NCBI RefSeq assembly: GCF_902459465.1
Contig: NC_047069.1
Location: forward strand, 19,530,001-19,594,000
Reading direction: 5' to 3'
DNA length: 64,000 bases
Source: Asterias rubens
Taxonomy: Eukaryota
Shown here in pieces: positions 34,001 to 43,000 of this stretch; the stretch's first letter is position 1; every line of letters begins with the position of its first letter. A model generated the notes under the pieces. The model did no database searches, was not told the DNA's origin, and was given only the letters and a program-made list of their open reading frames with translations. A program made the translations under genes and the position numbers.

Positions 34001-37000
34001 GATAATAAAAGCTTAACTTTAGAAAAAGTTAATTTTGATTATATAGCTGGCCGGTATGCTTTTTGGAATGAGAAGCCCCTTTGGTGCACAGATAAATTTT
34101 ATTGTTATAAAAAAAAATGTTCATCCATGTTCATCCATGTTTTTCTATTGAACGTTTCATCAAATGAAAGCTCAACAATCGCTCTAATTAGAGCGATTGT
34201 TGAGCCAAACAACCGAATGAGGGTGGTGTACATTGGTGTTGTAGTTTTGAACGTGTTTTGGAGGTCTCTAGGAACCACCTTGTGCACCAAAGAGCTAATT
34301 TGTTGAATATCAATTAAAAGTGTGCGTCCTTTCTAAAGGATTTTTCATTATTGGACAGATTATAAATGCTTAACTTAAAGGCACTGGACACTATTGGTAG
34401 TTGTCAAAGACTAGTATATTCTCAGTTGGTGTATCTCAATATACATGTTGTGCACAAAATAACAAACCTGTGAAAATTTGAGCTCAATTGGTCGTTGAAG
34501 TTGCGAGATAATAGTGGAAGAAAAAACACCCTTTTCACACGAAGTTGTGTGCTTTCAGATGCTTGATTTCAGGACCTCAAAGTCTGATTCTGAGGTCTCA
34601 AAATCACATTCGTGGAAAATTACTTTTTTCTCAAAAACTACGTTACTTCAGAGGGAGCTGTTTCTCACAATGTCTTATACTACCAACAGCTCCGCATTGC
34701 TCGTTACCAACAAGTAAGTTTTTATGCTAACAATTGGTTTGAGTGGTTACCAATAGTGTCCACTGCCTTTAAGACAAAGTTTACATATCATGTAGGTTTG
34801 TTAACGAGTACGCAAAATTAGCTCAAAAATGTGCACATAGTTGATCAATTTACTCACAGATTTCCTCATCAGTGAAGTCTGAACTTTCTTTGAAATCTTT
34901 AAAATTCAGGCAGACACATCCAGTTGGGTTGTCAACATCCAGTGCATCTTTTAAGTCTTGCATAAGACTCTTTTGCATTTTCAGAAGATCAATTTCCTGG
35001 ACTCCTTTCTTGTCATTGGTCACCTTTTCCAGCTGTTGCTTTATCTTTTTTTCATTTATACAGTTGCTTGCCATAATTTTTTTGAATTCTTTGCCCTTTT
35101 CATAGCAGAATCTTGTCACTTTGTCTTTAAGTTTTTGTTCCTCTTTACGGAGTTCAGCAACTTTTCTGTCTGCGTCATCAGTGATAATTTTGTGTTTTTG
35201 CTTTATCCTTTCTTGGTGTTCAGTGGATAACATGTCAAGAAGTTCTCTTTTTTTAGTAAACCTTTGTAGGCACTTCTCAACTTGTTCGACACGATCATTA
35301 ATGATGTCATTGCTTGATTCTATGGCTTGTGATAAACCAACGAGTTCGTGGTAAGGGTTTCGATGATCCTGGGTGCATGAAGCACATATCATTATGAAGC
35401 AACGTTGGCAGTAGAAAATCTTGTTCTGGTTGGGGTGTGTACCACATTTTGGTACATTCGTGAGAAGCTGAGAGTTCTTTTTGAAACTTGCTTTGCCAGA
35501 GCGTAGATGGTCGATTGAAGCTTTTTCATGGCTTTTTGTTCTTTTGCTACGTTGGTGCGCATTGTCACAAACCTCGCAAAGAAATTCCTGACAATCAAGG
35601 CAGTAGCTGACAGCTTCATCTTCCTCATCGCAATCTTGACAAATTATCTTAGTCTGAAGACGTCTGACGAGCTGCTGTTGTTCGGCAATAGTTTCCATCA
35701 AGTTAATTAAGAAAAGACTCTGGGTGAGGTCATAAATTCCTGCCTCTGGTGAAGACGTTTCTTTTCTGCAGATGGGACATATAATGTTTTCTTCCAGAGG
35801 ATGGGCTGTCCTCATTTCTTCAAGACAGTTTTGGCAGAAGTTGTGTTTACAAGTCAGAGTCTTGGGGTTGATGTACTGCGAGTAGCAAATCGGGCATTCC
35901 AGCTGCGCTTTGCTGATATTATCTAATACAGTTTGACCATTAAGACCATGATGCTCAACAAGCCGCTGTTGTTCAGCAATAGTTTCCATCAAACTAATTA
36001 ATGAAAAGCTCTTTGGGAGGTCATCAATTCCTTCCTCTGGTAAAGAGGTTTCTCTCCTGCAGACGGGACATGAAATGCTTTTTGTTGGATGGGCTTCCAT
36101 CATTTCTTCTAGACAGTTTTTGCAGAAACTGTGTTCGCAAGTCAGGGTCTTGGGGTTGATGTACTGGGAGTAGCAAATCAGGCATTGCAACTGCGTTTTT
36201 CTGATATTATCCAACACGGGTACACTGCTTACCTCATCCATTTTTATTCCAGTGTCTCACAAGTATTGCAGTAAGAATTGATAGCTGAAATGCTAACTTC
36301 TACTGCAGTTATCAATGCTGCTCAAATGATAAAATGTACAAAATACGGTTGATAGTATAAAACACTACAAGAAATAGTGTCCACTGTCTTTAAGGGCCAT
36401 ACTTGCTGTGATAAATCAGATCAGACACTTCTCCACGTCTCAGACCAGAATAATCATACCGGGGTTGAATTGGTACTGGCTGGCTCCAGAAGATGCTCAA
36501 ACAGTGTTTGAATATAAAAGAATAGATGAGTATCAACTCTGAAACAACCACTTTTTTTTACAAAATTTCTCCGTGCACATCACCTAGAATACAATTGGTA
36601 CTGATAGTGTTTGCCTACCACAAGTGAAGTATTCACTATACTGTAGAAGTAGAGTCTAGCTGAATAAGAGTGAACTATGAACAAATAATGCACACTAGCT
36701 GTGAAAATGGGTGTAACTGTGCTATTCATTTTTGTTTATGTAAACCAAGGGTATATGTCATTGTCAGACTTGCATTATTGAATTGGAAAACATGTGTCCT
36801 TGTCACAAAAAGTAATTTTGGTAATTTGGCGAATAGCTAGTGTGACTAATGTCAAAGTTGCAACTCAGTCAGCGCGCAGCCCACTGAAAAGTGCTTCCGT
36901 TTGTTTTTTACGTATGCACGTTCCGTTGGGCTGTGCATATTTAATGAGCTTGGCGACCCCTTTTTAAAAACCTTGTAACTGTCAAAGTTTTCAGTAGAAT

Positions 37001-40000
37001 TTGGAATTATTTGGAATGCAAATACAAAAATATACAAGATTTTTATCATGAACAAAATAATAGTGGTAGGGTGTACATTACGTGAGATTTTGTAGCAAAA
37101 ACATTTGCATTTTCGTGAAAAAAAAATGCACTTGTAAAAAGGCTTCAAACGTTGTCTCATCTATCCACCGTAGACATGAATTATATACGAATCTAAAGAG
37201 TAGACATTTCTTCTTACAAAAATCATGTATTCTGAGCATCAAATACCGTGAAACAGTCAGGAGCAGTCAAAATGTTCACCCTCGTTTCTCGGACTGCAAC
37301 GAACCACGAGTTTCAGCCTGCGGGTCCGATTTCAACAGAGCGCAAGTATGGTTGGTCAACGTACGTACACGGTCAGCCGTCTGCAGCCAAAAACAGCCAA
37401 TCACGTGCTGCGATACAGCACACAAGGCAGTTGGGTTAACAGACTGCATAAGCGGGAATCAACACAAAATTCGACGGCATGGAGCAACCAGACTATTATA
37501 TTTGCCTCGTACACTTTGCTGTGTGTAAACAAACCGCGACACTTGACTAACTTGAAACGCAATGAAGTGAGTATGGAAAATGTTTCTAATTATGCTTAAA
37601 ACAGACAATTCGTGACTGATTTTTCATAATGTATGTCTGCTTAATAATGTCTGATCGTTTTAAATAAGATTTTTGTTTGTAATGACTTTGAGCCAATTTT
37701 TTTGAAGAAGGGGTTGTGTAAAAAAAAAAATTAAAAAAATTAGGTATGTGTGTCAATCATTTATACATCAGTCCAGCACTCAGCAGTAACTATTAATAAT
37801 AATAAGTCATAATAAACACAGTCAAACTTCTTAAGCGATATAACAACAATTTATTTCAACAATATATATGTTTGAACTTGTAAACATCATAACAAATATG
37901 TAAACAAATTATAGCACCTTATAAAATACTTCATTTAAAAAATAAATGAGAAAAACAACTAAAAATGTATGTATGCAAAAAAAAAAAAAAGTACTAGTAC
38001 ATACACTAGGATTTCCTTCATACTGTTTGTTTGATATATCAATCTAAATTGCAAGGTCATAAAATATTGCATAGTCGAAATAAATTGCCCTTGTGTTCTA
38101 ATACAAAAACAAAGACCTGTGTAAATACCCAACTTTAGCATAATAAGAATTAACATTTGGTCTTACTTTTTATTAAAAAATGGCAGTTTATATAAACAGT
38201 TTGGCAGCTTTCGGTATTGACAAAAATACCTGTGTGTATAACTTTTTGGATATATAATATTAATAATAAAACAATACAAAGACCCGTTTAAAAACATTAA
38301 TATAATAATATTAATAATAGTACAATATAAAAAAATTAATTGACAGATGTAGGCAAGGAACTGTCCAAACAACTTATACCAGTTCAATATAGCGATGGAA
38401 TGTAACAGTTCAATCGTATATAAAATGCCCACACTTAGATTAAACACTACAACCAAAACTAAAACAATCACTATTTAAAGAAGCTGGACGCTTTACACCT
38501 AAACAAAATAGCTGTTGTAAAAAGTAGAAAAGTATTTACAAGTTGTGGATTTACACTCTAAGGTCTGTATGTATAACTTGTTGGATATACATAATACATG
38601 TTTAATACTAATAGTACACGAAAGTATTGTTTTAGTACAAAGACCCGTTTAAAAACAATACTTTAGCATAAGAATCAGCATTATTGCAATTGTCTTACTT
38701 CTTTTAAAAAAAATTGCAGTTTATATAAATAGTTTTGCAGCTGTTGGTATTGATAACTATACACAAGACCAAAATGCAAACACATGTACATGTGTAAGTC
38801 CTTTGTGTATAACTTGTTGGATATATAATAGTACATGAAAGTATTGTTAAGTACAAAGACCCGTGTAAATACATGTATCATACTTTAGCATGATAAAGAA
38901 TCAACATTATTACAACTAACTGTCTTACTTCTTTCACATTTACAAAATTTGGCAGTTTATATAAAACAGTTTGGCAGCTTTCAACATTGATAAAATACAC
39001 AAACCCAAAATGAAATATTGGATATATAATATAAACTAAAAGTACAATATAAAAATAAATAACATTACAGATGTAGGCAAGGAACTGACCTAACAATTTA
39101 TCAGTTCAACATTGCGGTGGAATGTAGAAGTTCAATCGTATCAAAAATGTCCAAACTTAGATTGAATACTACAACCAAAACATTCACTTAAGAAACTGGA
39201 CATTTTACACATAAATATCTGCTTTAGAAAATAGAAAAACATTACAAGTGGTGGATACTAAAAACGGTGGAGAACGAAATGTTGTTCTATAAAGGCAAAG
39301 AGGGATGGTCTTTATCTCATCCGTTTCATCAACAGCGAAACAAGTATTGAAAATCTCTTTAGAACATTCCACAGTGTGAGAAGAAGTTAAAGTGCACAAG
39401 TTAAAATTGGATAAGGCACATACTACTCTCTTTTTTTTACGGGATTTCTCTGGTGTGTATTCAGGATTGGTTTGTTTTTTTGTAACAGAAATTTTACAAG
39501 CCTTACAAATAAAGTCAGTGTCACTCAACTTGGAGTTTGTTTTGAACCACAGTTTAACCTGCTCATTTCTTAATGACTGCACTTGCATAAATGAAAAACA
39601 TTCTCTTCCACATCTTGCGCATTTTACCTGCCCTTGTGGAAGCGGTTTTTCTCTCTGGGCTCTTCGCTTTACCCCTGCAATGGTTGATTGTCTTTGCTGT
39701 ACTTGAATGACATTGATGAAGGTTTGCCACATGGCCAGGCAGCCAGCACCTAGAACGGAAAAATAAGTATGTAATGTAATAAATTATCTTCATTTTAAGT
39801 AGCTTTGTGCAAGAAATCTTTGTTTACAAGTCATACATACAAAAATATGTTGAAATTGTTCTCCTTTTCAAATTTTGTTTAAATAGGTGGCAGTTGGAAA
39901 TAGTTGGAAAAACATTTAGGCAACAGTGGATTCAATTTTTTTCAAAATCTAATGCCTTTACCCTTGTACTGATGACATCATGGTTTGTTTATCACGTTCC

Positions 40001-43000
40001 AGAAGAATGGAACCCCATTCATTGTGTACATGTATGTTTACGACTGTCAGAAAAGTGCCAGTAAAGTTACAGCACTTAAGGAATGTTACAAAAAAAAAAA
40101 AAAACATCATCCGTAAGGGGGCCTATTGAACTCGTGACAGTACAAAAGCTTATAGTGAATTGTTGGTTAAAAGAATCCATTGTGAAATACCTTTCGATTT
40201 TTCTTTTTCCTCTTCTTCCTTGCCTGGGCCATCCTCCGCCTCTTCTTCACTCCAGCTTTTTTACGCTGAATGTATGGCGTGGGTTGTTGTGGGGGACGGA
40301 CACATGATGACGACAGCACATGCAGCTTGTGGTGGTAAACCATCACCTTCATTGGCAGACACATAGGCTGGAAAACTGGAAGGGAGTAGGGGTCAACTGA
40401 TGGACAGGTGAATTTACACCCAACCTGCTGGAATCCATCACTGTCGACTGCAGCACTTCTCTTTTTTCCTGATGGTTGCCTTGGATGTTTTCTCGTTGCG
40501 TTCTCTTTGAGTTGTGTTTCCGGTGTTGATGGAGATGGGGGTCCGGATGAGGGCGAGGATTGGGGTTTCGAAATGGGCTCTTTCTTCCTTTTTTTCTTTC
40601 TGACAAGCAGCTGCAGTTCTTTTGGAACGAACCGATTGGTAGAGCTTGTACGAGAGCCTGGAATTACTCTGATGAGTAGGGATGTGGTGACGTCAGTGAT
40701 GACATCCGCCAACCTTCGAATGCCATAATGATTCAGATGAAGTCCATCACAAGAGAAAAGTTCTGGAGGAAAGTTCTCTGTTAGATCAATGAATATGCAG
40801 CCTACCTTCTTGCAAAGCTTAGCAAGGTGCATATTTAGAATGATGCCCTTCTCGTTGAGGATTTTGAAGTCAGAACGTGGCAAGATGGAATTTATTATGA
40901 TTTTAGCCGATGGAAACGTTTCCTTTGCCAATGAAATCAGCTGCTCAAAGTTCTGGAGGTCTTTGTGGAGAACACTCTCATCCAGATCGTTGGTACCCAC
41001 ATGTAGGACAACAACATGCGGCTTCTGTCCAGTACCATTGCGATCTGCATGTAACTTTTTCAACAACGAAACCATACGACGTACAGTGCATCCTGGCTTT
41101 GTAATAGTATCTGCCAAAAACCAAGGACTTTCAAGGTGTACGTACCTCGTCAGGGAGTCTCCCAAAATCTTCACGTTGAAGTAGGGGAGGTCATCTTGAC
41201 TGCTGGGCCTGTGATTGTCAACGGATGTAAAAAAAAAAATACAGATGAGAGGGGAAGGGTGGACTAAGTGTTTGCAAACTATTTGGCTAAGCTGCGCATA
41301 AAACTATGCAAAGAATCAATCACTCTCATGTACAATCTACAATGTAAAAACTATACATGACAATCGATTTAAAATGTCTACAGAAAGAAGGAATGGCCAT
41401 CATGTTACATGGCCATTGCCTTTGTATACAAAACACTTCACACACAAGTAGTATTTAGTTACTTAGTAATTTAAATTAAGTATATTGTTGTTTACATTTG
41501 TCAACTCTCAAGGCAAGGGAACAAAATAAGCACATTCCGGTAAGTTCTAAAGAATAAATTGAGTGAATAAAGAACAAGTTCTGTCCGTTCCTGTTTTATG
41601 ACTATTTTGCAAAACTAAATCGACAGAGAAAATACGAGCTGCCATGATTATGGCCATGACGAACGGAATGTAGTGTACTGGCTTTTGTTCTTGTACTTTG
41701 TAGAGTGTCTGCATTATTGTATTGAAATAAAATTTAATAATAATAGTATTTACTGAGTATTTATTCATATTATCAGGTTGGAAGAGCAATTTTGTTCACA
41801 CTTGCTAAAAAAAGTTGGGAATTTTATCACGAAATTGGTAATGCACGATGCAATACATCTCTTTTTCAGTTTGTTCAAGCCAAGGATTTTATCATGAAAT
41901 TGGTAATGCATGATGCACTTCTTCTCTTTTTTAGTTTAATAAAGCCCAGTATTTTACCACAAAATTGTTGATGCACGATGAAATACATCTCTATTGGCAG
42001 CCCAAGGCTAGGATTTTATCACGAAATTGGTGATGCACGATGTATAGTTGCACACGTAAAATTATTGTACGTGACGTCACACACTTCGAGAGTAAATACG
42101 CCCGAAATCGAAAAAACGGACATTTTCAAACTTAAAAAAGAGAACAAATCCCTGATCCCGTAGAAATGAAAATGGTGTGAAACAATCGCAAAACTTGCAT
42201 TGTCAACAAATACCGACATCGTTTTCGAGCCCGTTTATCGAAACAGTCAGGAGCACTTAAAATTCTGAGGTACATTTACGAAGGAGCATATTTTGAAGCA
42301 AATTTTGAAGGCATAATTTTCCGTTAAAATGTATTTAAAAAGATGAAAAAACGGGGTTTTCATAGCGTGTAATGTAATGATTGTACTTACCAATCCATCT
42401 TGGCTCAGCGAGTGACCTTAGGGGTTTCCCGTGACCCTTTTCAGGGGTAGCGCTCAACTCTCGTCTTTTCTCGCAAATTTCCAAAACGCCCGTGAACGGG
42501 TTTCACTTGCAAACAAATCTGTTGAATAGTCTCATTATATCGTAGGCTGCGCGCTGACTGAACTATAGTTTGTTTAGTCAAGTCGAGGCTACCGTTATTC
42601 AACTACCCCAATTAATTATGCCGCCTGGACTACTACAAAAATAGCTGCAACTTCCTGCTTGGTGAAGCAATTGTGTCGCTCATTAGTCACGCCAACATAA
42701 TTTACTTCAAAATACAATCATTAGTGACACAAACCTTCAATTGTTTAAGTGAGACTCTTACAATATTGCGCTGTGGCAAAAATATGCCGTAAAGCAACTT
42801 GGGAATTAAAAATAAGTTGTGACTAGTCTCAAAGTCTCAACTTTTTGAAGCGCAACTAGTCAAGTAGAGTTGCCCAGGCTTAGTCATGCGTAAAAACTGG
42901 TGATGTGCAATCAACAGAATTCTGTCAAGTGAGTGTGTTATTAGTAAGGGTTTTTCCTGATATTGGGGATCTTCTCAAAACCTCCTAGTTCAATTTTTTT

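Follow-up and report, generated by a model that had tools for sequence, protein, structure and literature searches.

The window analysed here, a 64,000-nucleotide stretch of the genome of the echinoderm Asterias rubens, carries at positions 36866–42560 a DNA transposon of 5,695 bp, delimited by reading of the region and a repeat scan and followed through the 417.6-Mb assembly of its host. The element encloses a gene for an SGNH-type esterase and the remnant of a transposase gene, and, as a preliminary description made from the letters of the window had noted, it is bounded by perfect 16-bp terminal inverted repeats (TIRs) and flanked by a target-site duplication (TSD) with the sequence AACT. 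Its left end reads CAGTCAGCGCGCAGCC (36866–36881), the exact reverse complement occupies 42545–42560, and the repeat stretches to 19 nt when one mismatch is allowed. The boundaries are as follows:

36862–36865, left TSD, AACT (the same 4-mer stands at 42561–42564)
36866–36884, plus strand, left TIR, 16 nt perfect or 19 nt with one mismatch (repeat scan, genome search)
42542–42560, minus strand, right TIR (repeat scan, genome search)
42561–42564, right TSD, AACT (flank comparison)

A search of the 417.6 Mb for the TIR 16-mer, allowing at most one mismatch, returned only seven sites, against none for the reversed control, and the pairing of these ends in the window can therefore not be attributed to chance. 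The seven sites resolve into three convergent pairs, 5.7–6.1 kb apart on contig C8, and one lone end on contig C98. The genome-wide check for shared ends that the preliminary description had proposed thus yielded, besides the copy in the window, two further copies with both ends and one partial copy, the former being:

C8:17,129,895–17,135,927, copy L008, TSD GTTG or TGTG
C8:20,782,993–20,789,073, copy L009, TSD GTTG or TGTG (the two sister copies carry one each)

Neither L008 nor L009 shares flanking sequence with the window copy; their own 4-bp duplications are GTTG and TGTG, and one copy is inverted. On C98, the lone end matches at 99.9% identity across 702 nt, is severed by the start of its contig and has a unique flank. 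Because the other copies have unrelated flanks and 4-bp duplications of their own, the boundaries, the TSD and the mobility of the window element are established. Outside positions 39266–39700 the three copies are 99.2–99.9% identical (gaps counted), with few substitutions and small insertions or deletions (indels), while within that interval they differ by large indels. Near-identical sequence also occurs in sequencing runs that bear three organism labels and come from five studies. Contigs spanning the window's own junctions are present in runs X1–X3, and in run X6 the element is flanked by other sequence, diverges by about 1% and has frame-breaking indels in the esterase exon.

That three near-identical copies lie on one contig within 3.7 Mb of each other might be taken to mean that they stem from a segmental duplication and not from transposition. 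However, homology ends exactly at the TIR tips, with unrelated sequence beyond them, a different 4-bp direct duplication borders each copy, the orientation of one is reversed, and the sample of run X6 holds the element in yet another context. The clustering itself fits the local hopping known for cut-and-paste elements, and the probability left for a segmental duplication is negligible. An empty site, sought as a 31-nt reconstructed unoccupied target with at most two mismatches, is absent from the assembly, and no read joint skips the element.

Transposition having generated these copies, the content of the element can be considered. A gene of three coding exons with a product of 368 amino acids (aa) lies on the minus strand, its joined frame and stop having been worked out by local translation:

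42391–42398, minus strand, esterase exon 1, coding part ATGGATTG, donor GTAAGTAC (conserved in the sister family described below, family 2)
41209–42390, minus strand, intron 1 (splice-site reading)
40191–41208, minus strand, esterase exon 2, with the SGNH domain, a Pro/Ser-rich linker and two Lys/Arg clusters (Pfam PF13472, PDB match)
39750–40190, minus strand, intron 2, GT...AG (splice-site reading)
39669–39749, minus strand, esterase exon 3, 26 codons and TAA stop (acceptor ttctag/GTG, phase 0)

The ATG at 42398 lies 162 nt inside the right end, in keeping with a start placed about 160 bp inside the right TIR in the preliminary description. The 8-nt first coding exon proposed there is indeed in phase with the SGNH exon: the exon 2 acceptor, cacag/G at 41208, fits it, and exon 2 ends in AAAG/GTATTT in phase 0. 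While exon 1 and the SGNH exon of that gene model stand, a third coding exon (39749–39669) had been overlooked; it measures 81 nt and ends in a TAA at 39671–39669. Exon 3 is independently backed, since the RefSeq model LOC117293625 (an “uncharacterized protein” of Asterias rubens), which lies on L008 and carries the two substitutions of that 17.13-Mb copy, uses the same exon 2–3 junction and has the same end, ...NRK/VLAAWPCGKPSSMSFKYSKDNQPLQG (...LQG), its start being placed at an internal Met. The 8-nt first exon is likewise backed, because a diverged sister family of the same genome, family 2, has ATGGCGTG/GTAAGTAC 161 nt inside its own end, as opposed to 162 nt here; the DNA of family 2 no longer aligns with that of the window family, yet the first exon has been kept. 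Intron 1 also holds 3.5 copies of a 65-bp tandem repeat (41821–42042).

The four SGNH blocks, previously read as intact, are all present and in order in the predicted protein: GDSL at residues 19–22, KPGCT at 40–44, GTND at 74–77 and DGLH at 157–160, with Ser21, the block II Gly in KPGCT, Asn76, Asp157 and His160 as the predicted catalytic residues. Exon 2 matches the Pfam model Lipase_GDSL_2 (PF13472) with an E value of 3.8e-12 and 47.5 bits, above the gathering score of 32.9; this and the other database searches with the esterase used single exons, not the joined three-exon protein. The domain is followed by a Pro/Ser-rich stretch and then by two Lys/Arg clusters, at residues 206–212 and 324–342, which correspond to the basic tail of the preliminary description. 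Judging from these motifs, the product of this first open reading frame (ORF1) may well be an active esterase, and its basic tail might serve for nuclear import.

The best PDB match of exon 2 is 4c1b (E 3.1e-12, 165 residues aligned, catalytic residues in register), followed by a putative PAF acetylhydrolase (E 4e-5), so that the gene product is closest to an ORF1 protein (ORF1p) esterase, and not to cellular SGNH enzymes, as judged among solved structures. The 4c1b structure is the esterase domain of the ORF1 protein of the zebrafish long interspersed nuclear element (LINE) ZfL2-1; this esterase binds acidic phospholipids, and its authors proposed a membrane-related role (PMC3905857). Such a likeness could be expected if the SGNH ORF belonged to a LINE or Ngaro element nested in an unrelated TIR element, the finding named in the preliminary description as one that would overturn it. 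The element contains neither a reverse-transcriptase or endonuclease ORF nor internal retroelement boundaries, and the gene has spliceosomal introns and a first exon tied to the TIR in two families. With a conserved, spliced gene starting about 161 nt inside the terminus of two diverged families, a nested retroelement is so improbable that it can be set aside.

Regarding the esterase gene as a part of the transposon itself, the remainder of the element can be interpreted by comparison with its sister copies and with full-length homologues:

39299–39732, minus strand, transposase ORF remnant, ATG and N-terminal CxxC...CxxC finger region (homology to the Acanthaster protein P0021)
39298–39299, deletion junction of the window copy (pairwise megablast of the three copies; tblastn against full-length homologues)
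36885–39298, minus strand, 3′ non-coding arm, downstream of the transposase ORF in the parent, common to all three copies

No transposase was visible in the preliminary description, and it is true that the window copy lacks most of this ORF through an internal deletion, but about 145 N-terminal codons remain at 39732–39299, in the −1 frame relative to the esterase ORF and overlapping its stop. They begin an ORF of 175 aa (39732–39205), MWQ..IAGVK..CARCGREC..FICKACK, the frame of which stays open past 39299, without homology, to a stop at 39205. Although searches of this ORF against Pfam and NCBIfam gave nothing useful, the remnant is 39% identical to residues 12–122 of P0021, a 1,994-aa Acanthaster homologue (tblastn, E 2.6e-15), and it is also homologous to the start of a 2,010-aa frame in family 2 and to full-length homologues in other echinoderms. 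What is missing from the window copy, from about transposase codon 145 to just beyond the end of the ORF, was lost in a single deletion. The 3′ arm beyond it is AT-rich, with dispersed internal repeats at about 38100–39200, and is 99.5% identical to that of L008 and 99.2% to that of L009 (gaps counted).

When the three copies were aligned pairwise by megablast, one clean junction was found in each. The residues of P0021 to which the retained parts correspond are:

window copy, residues 12–122
L008 (17.13-Mb copy), residues 12–84 and 1915–1941
L009 (20.78-Mb copy), residues 1803–1941

These deletions are different and are not nested; no copy can be derived from another by further deletion, and all three therefore descend separately from a longer parent, which, to judge by the sequences, was active very recently. 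In the window copy and L008 the esterase ORF retains its natural stop, while in L009 the deletion removes the stop and fuses the ORF in frame to a CXC tail, so that it measures 569 aa. Deletions of this kind would probably have arisen when repair of the gap left by excision was interrupted, a process known from P and Ac/Ds elements. Moreover, the window copy, its ends being intact, might be mobilised in trans. A 6.3-kb contig of run X6 runs 3.5 kb beyond the window's deletion junction, an indication that this sample holds a longer copy. Contigs of runs X2 and X3, which come from two other samples, have 142 other letters at the junction, where the window has 13 (39282–39296), a difference that indicates a fourth deletion variant, or another allele, of the element.

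What the parent may have looked like is indicated by family 2, detected in protein searches of the genome as several loci at which an SGNH exon precedes a 2,010-aa open frame (at C24:644101–650133, for example) by about 0.4 kb. All of its copies start at one point, CA(A/G)TCAGTCCGCA(G/C)TGCG, and its ends are CAATCAGTCCGCAGTGCG and CAGTCAGTCCGCACTGCA. Pairing of these ends by pattern gave elements of 10,885, 12,215, 10,846 and 10,417 bp, along with deleted ones of 4,751 and 2,404 bp, and in all five pairs tested the 4-bp TSDs match (AACT, ACAA, CAAG, ATGG and TAAA). The family 2 termini share CAGTCAG and CGCA (CA(A/G)TCAG..CGCA) with the TIR of the window, and the layout consists of the same 8-nt first exon, the SGNH exon and then the long open frame. 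A related but degenerate family on contig C4 has the end CAGTCAGAGCGCAAAC and has lost its first exon. The catalytic blocks of the esterase are kept in the window family, family 2, the C4 family and proteins of other samples, and are degenerate in some dead copies; a motif VIPG..P(K/H)EL..LV followed by a basic run is likewise conserved. Because the catalytic blocks are conserved across such diverged families, the esterase gene is best read, from these sequences, as a selected and regular component (ORF1) of the transposon, and not as captured cargo or a nested LINE. The preliminary description was thus right to place a hydrolase gene in the transposon, but this gene is its regular first ORF and not an occasional accessory.

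Capture of a host gene or gene fragment by a non-autonomous element, much as Pack-MULEs transduplicate genes, would be suggested by a copy that has no working transposase and whose sole intact gene encodes no recombinase. Nevertheless, the same gene, with the same 8-nt exon 1 at an equal distance from the end, is found in diverged families that include full-length elements, and the same ...LQG end, with a stop overlapping the second ORF (ORF2), recurs in them. Furthermore, the in-genome matches examined all lie within transposon copies, and the best solved relative is a LINE ORF1p esterase. Host capture is accordingly considered very improbable.

As ORF1 of the transposon, the esterase is accompanied in the full-length relatives by a very long protein. 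Homologues of 1,700–2,000 aa occur in Patiria, Acanthaster, Asterias amurensis, Lytechinus, Strongylocentrotus, Diadema, Amphiura and the annelid Owenia, and in none of them does the same predicted protein contain an SGNH domain. Pfam recognises OTU, DUF6589 and Tesmin/TSO1 CXC domains in the long frame and its homologues, and a Zn (Cys) finger precedes the OTU domain in the long frame. An AlphaFold model of the 1,197-aa Patiria homologue P0019, with a predicted local distance difference test score (pLDDT) of 81, matches OTU deubiquitinases (best Foldseek E 4.3e-4; VIA Z 12.0). Foldseek results for this model are dominated by the OTU matches, and it is in the VIA wide search that a transposase fold becomes visible: the P element transposase (6p5a) is matched with Z 12.4 over 326 residues and Hermes with Z 9.3, and further matches are Tn5 (Z 7.5), ISCth4, a RAG-like transposase and, with Z 6–8, retroviral integrase cores. 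The core of P0019 would thus adopt an RNase-H-like transposase fold, an assignment made on the model at the level of the fold.

For the C-terminal 701 aa of family 2, the AlphaFold model has a pLDDT >90 over residues ~140–520, and Foldseek retrieves XRN1 (E 2.3e-6; XRN1/XRN2/Rat1), FEN1 (1.7e-3), T5 flap endonuclease (2.3e-3) and EXO1 (4.3e-3). These structures share the FEN/XPG 5′-nuclease fold, and a protein-atlas lead points weakly in the same direction. Pfam XPG models gave no match at E < 0.05, and a PDB sequence search with the nuclease half returned nothing.

AcademX is a lineage of the Academ superfamily (Kapitonov and Jurka 2010 and Kojima 2020, as summarised in PMC10045372), described as nuclease-encoding, with an XPG-type nuclease and 3–4-bp TSDs (PMC10045372). 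The TSDs measured here are 4 bp in three window-family copies and five family 2 elements, the elements are TIR-bounded (16 nt perfect in the window family), and on the family 2 model an XPG/FEN-type nuclease is fused to the transposase, a part that the window copy lacks. The elements are filed as AcademX-like because one giant protein with both transposase and XPG-type nuclease, together with 3–4-bp TSDs, matches that description. In addition, the relatives of the window element share with AcademX a cut-and-paste organisation, occurrence in echinoderms and a Cys-rich domain within the very long protein. They are unlike it in that their conserved ORF1 encodes an SGNH esterase of LINE type and their ORF2 includes an OTU domain, and the likeness of the window copy, without its transposase, is one of description and not of reference sequence. 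A literature search of limited reach, in which absence is no proof, found no paper linking Academ with an esterase or OTU domain. The little-described cut-and-paste family, possibly Academ, of the preliminary description is thereby borne out by copies with their own TSDs, full-length relatives with transposase and nuclease folds, and duplications of 4 bp.

The elements could instead represent a separate, unnamed superfamily near the P- or hAT-like transposases, resembling AcademX only in TSD length and the fused nuclease. Consistent with this, the transposase core comes structurally closest to the P element transposase, with Hermes next; in Pfam it appears only under DUF6589; and likeness to Academ was judged from a description instead of a reference sequence. 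No other described superfamily is known to combine a transposase, an XPG/FEN nuclease and 3–4-bp TSDs. The combination of a very long protein carrying transposase and XPG/FEN-type nuclease, TSDs of 3–4 bp and occurrence in echinoderms matches AcademX (PMC10045372), and a separate superfamily is therefore thought unlikely.

Taken together, the ends, TSDs, copies, deletion maps, domain homologies and folds found here lead us to read window positions 36866–42560 as a non-autonomous, internally deleted copy of an AcademX-type cut-and-paste transposon of Asterias rubens, with a probability of roughly 85%. By comparison with the sister family, the full-length parent would probably measure 10–11 kb and be transcribed as a single spliced unit in which two reading frames overlap. 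ORF1 would encode the 368-aa SGNH esterase of LINE-ORF1p type with its basic tail. ORF2, in the −1 frame, would encode some 2,000 aa comprising a Cys finger, an OTU protease, an RNase-H-like core (DUF6589), a FEN/XPG-like 5′ nuclease and a CXC domain. The transposase would act on the CAGTCAG... inverted ends and leave 4-bp target duplications. The window copy lost ORF2 from about codon 145 in one deletion, keeping both ends and an intact ORF1, and L008 and L009, on the same chromosome, underwent different single ORF2 deletions, making three independent descents from a very recent longer parent.

Several points weigh against this reading. The transposase and nuclease folds were modelled on the Patiria homologue and family 2, and not on the lost ORF2 of the window family. 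The AcademX assignment, as a consequence of how it was made, reflects architecture, modelled folds and TSD length, not alignment to reference Academ transposases. A full-length copy with exactly these ends was found nowhere in the assembly, either with the TIR pattern or by protein search, and the origin of the deletions by gap repair is drawn from analogy with P and Ac/Ds elements. Finally, although the esterase gene is, by its sequence, presumably expressed, none of the runs that hold it is on record as RNA, and the only run guessed to be RNA (X1) contributed, at low depth, four pieces of about 150 nt without splicing; no spliced joints were seen in three other runs, which behaved as genomic DNA.

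The junction between the two reading frames is conserved:

39669–39680, minus strand, overlap site TTG CAG GGG TAA, with the esterase end ...LQG and stop and the crossing −1 frame ..AGV.. (the same in three diverged families)

In the window family, family 2 and a third family (L036), the esterase ends in ...LQG and a stop on TTG CAG GGG TRA, and the −1 transposase frame crosses this G-run as (I/F)AGV(K/N). The ORF2 frame of families 2 and 3 opens just 3–4 codons before the G-run, with no ATG before the conserved Zn finger; the first Met of ORF2 in family 2 is 103 codons in, and family 3 has no intron 2. The window family has an ATG 18 codons upstream, at 39732, and in other species the homologues apparently have a start Met of their own. 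It is tentatively conceivable that the LINE-type esterase ORF1 is coupled to the transposase by a −1 shift at TTG CAG GGG TRA (39680–39669), the site resembling the signature of a −1 slip of tRNA-Gly on G GGG with the stop in the A site. Instead of such a frameshift, the polymerase might slip on the G-run, or ORF2 might begin at a non-AUG codon.

As in retroviral-type gag-pol and the orfA-orfB of IS3-family elements, the ORF1 stop falls together with the opening of a −1 ORF2 frame on a conserved G-run, and two families here are without an upstream AUG for ORF2. Unlike those systems, CAG GGG TRA is no canonical X XXY YYZ heptamer. A hairpin 11–13 nt downstream of the overlap is present in two of the three families (2 and 3), and folding of the downstream RNA is no better than that of shuffles (z-scores −1.8, −0.7 and +0.4). 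If the coupling were true, an esterase-transposase fusion would be made in a gag-pol-like ratio, and a cut-and-paste transposon would have taken over from retroelements not only their first gene but also their logic of expression, with the OTU protease perhaps processing the fusion. The window copy, in which the site is kept, would then make mostly free esterase and some esterase fused to the Zn-finger remnant.

Other features of the element and of its relatives may be noted. The motif that the preliminary description saw recurring near 37251 and 42241 is a true direct repeat of 24 nt, 22 of which are identical:

37250–37273, plus strand, subterminal direct repeat copy 1, GAAACAGTCAGGAGCA core (repeat scan)
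42240–42263, plus strand, subterminal direct repeat copy 2 (repeat scan)

CAAATACCG precedes the copy in both arms, and the exact 16-mer core is confined, genome-wide, to copies of the window element. A symmetric transposase-binding role is not obvious, since the two copies are direct and not inverted. The one-mismatch variant GAAACAGTTAGGAGCA occurs about 17 times across many contigs and probably belongs to an unrelated repeat family; all one-mismatch variants together give 32 genome matches, versus 6 for the reversed control.

Derivatives of related families are found elsewhere in the genome. Four degenerate SGNH copies, 43–48% identical, lie at C4:7691807–7714572 (L037, L038, L043 and L051); two are preceded by the TIR-like CAGTCAGAGCGCAAAC, and one has 13 in-frame stops. 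A repeat of more than 3.1 kb at no fewer than ten loci on different contigs (L053–L062, for example C20:3415982–3419113), with copies 98–99.5% identical and ends outside the loci, contains only the first ~42 codons of a related SGNH exon (62% identical to that of the window) and then breaks off. Its likely source is a further family of this transposon group, of which it would be a short, amplified derivative. At C24:604957–609999, a 575-aa frame (L065:4958–6682) has transposase sequence attached directly to the first ~80 residues of an SGNH domain of family 3 and is another deletion derivative. It adjoins a 918-aa open frame without a Pfam match (L065:7247–10000), which may be a nested retroelement gag-like region. 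In the predicted 520-aa protein P0004, from an ENA assembly of another sample and 71% identical to family 2, an SGNH domain is joined in frame to the FEN-like nuclease and CXC part, so that fusions by deletion of this sort occur in other genomes too. Finally, about 1.2 kb upstream of a family 2 element, at C24:638625–640143 (L063:2626–4144), two adjoining plus-strand ORFs of 162 and 318 aa have a Walker-A motif and weak, sub-threshold Pfam matches to the SF3 helicases of papillomavirus E1 and parvovirus NS1 (E 6e-5 and 5e-3); they may be the remnant of a Rep/NS1-like gene of a virus or other mobile element.

The window element itself is an ordinary non-autonomous, dead-end derivative, whereas its family is an unusual variant of a poorly known superfamily. 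Like Ds, derived from Ac, and KP and other deleted P elements, it has intact ends and a single internal deletion of transposase coding sequence, several independent deletions have come from one young parent, and the copies cluster on one chromosome. It differs from them in that the derivative keeps one complete gene of its parent and in that the parent was not found in this assembly. New here are the three-way deletion map, the natural stop of ORF1 in the window copy and the conservation of the overlap site in a third family. As the three copies are independent, differently deleted descendants of one parent, the window copy and its two sisters show that, in a model echinoderm, a DNA transposon family was active very recently.

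The esterase is of wider interest. Like the ORF1p esterase of ZfL2-1 and those of CR1, L2 and RTEX, it is basic and is encoded by the first ORF of a mobile element, upstream of an enzyme ORF. It differs in that no coiled coil is seen before the domain and a long Pro/Ser/Lys/Arg tail follows it, in that its gene is spliced, and in that its host is a TIR-bounded DNA transposon with a transposase ORF downstream, without an ORF2 for reverse transcriptase and endonuclease or an RNA intermediate to package. The SGNH esterase, the role of which in LINE retrotransposition is unclear, is hence also the conserved first gene of a DNA transposon without an RNA intermediate, and this argues against a function limited to the assembly of ribonucleoproteins. 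A common job in both kinds of element, such as passage of a membrane or the nuclear envelope or the removal of an acyl or acetyl mark, is proposed instead. Moreover, the poorly known Academ-type transposases would gain a domain map of Zn finger, OTU, RNase-H-like core, FEN-like nuclease and CXC, and the conserved overlap of ORF1 and ORF2 offers a case in which possible translational recoding by a eukaryotic DNA transposon can be tested.

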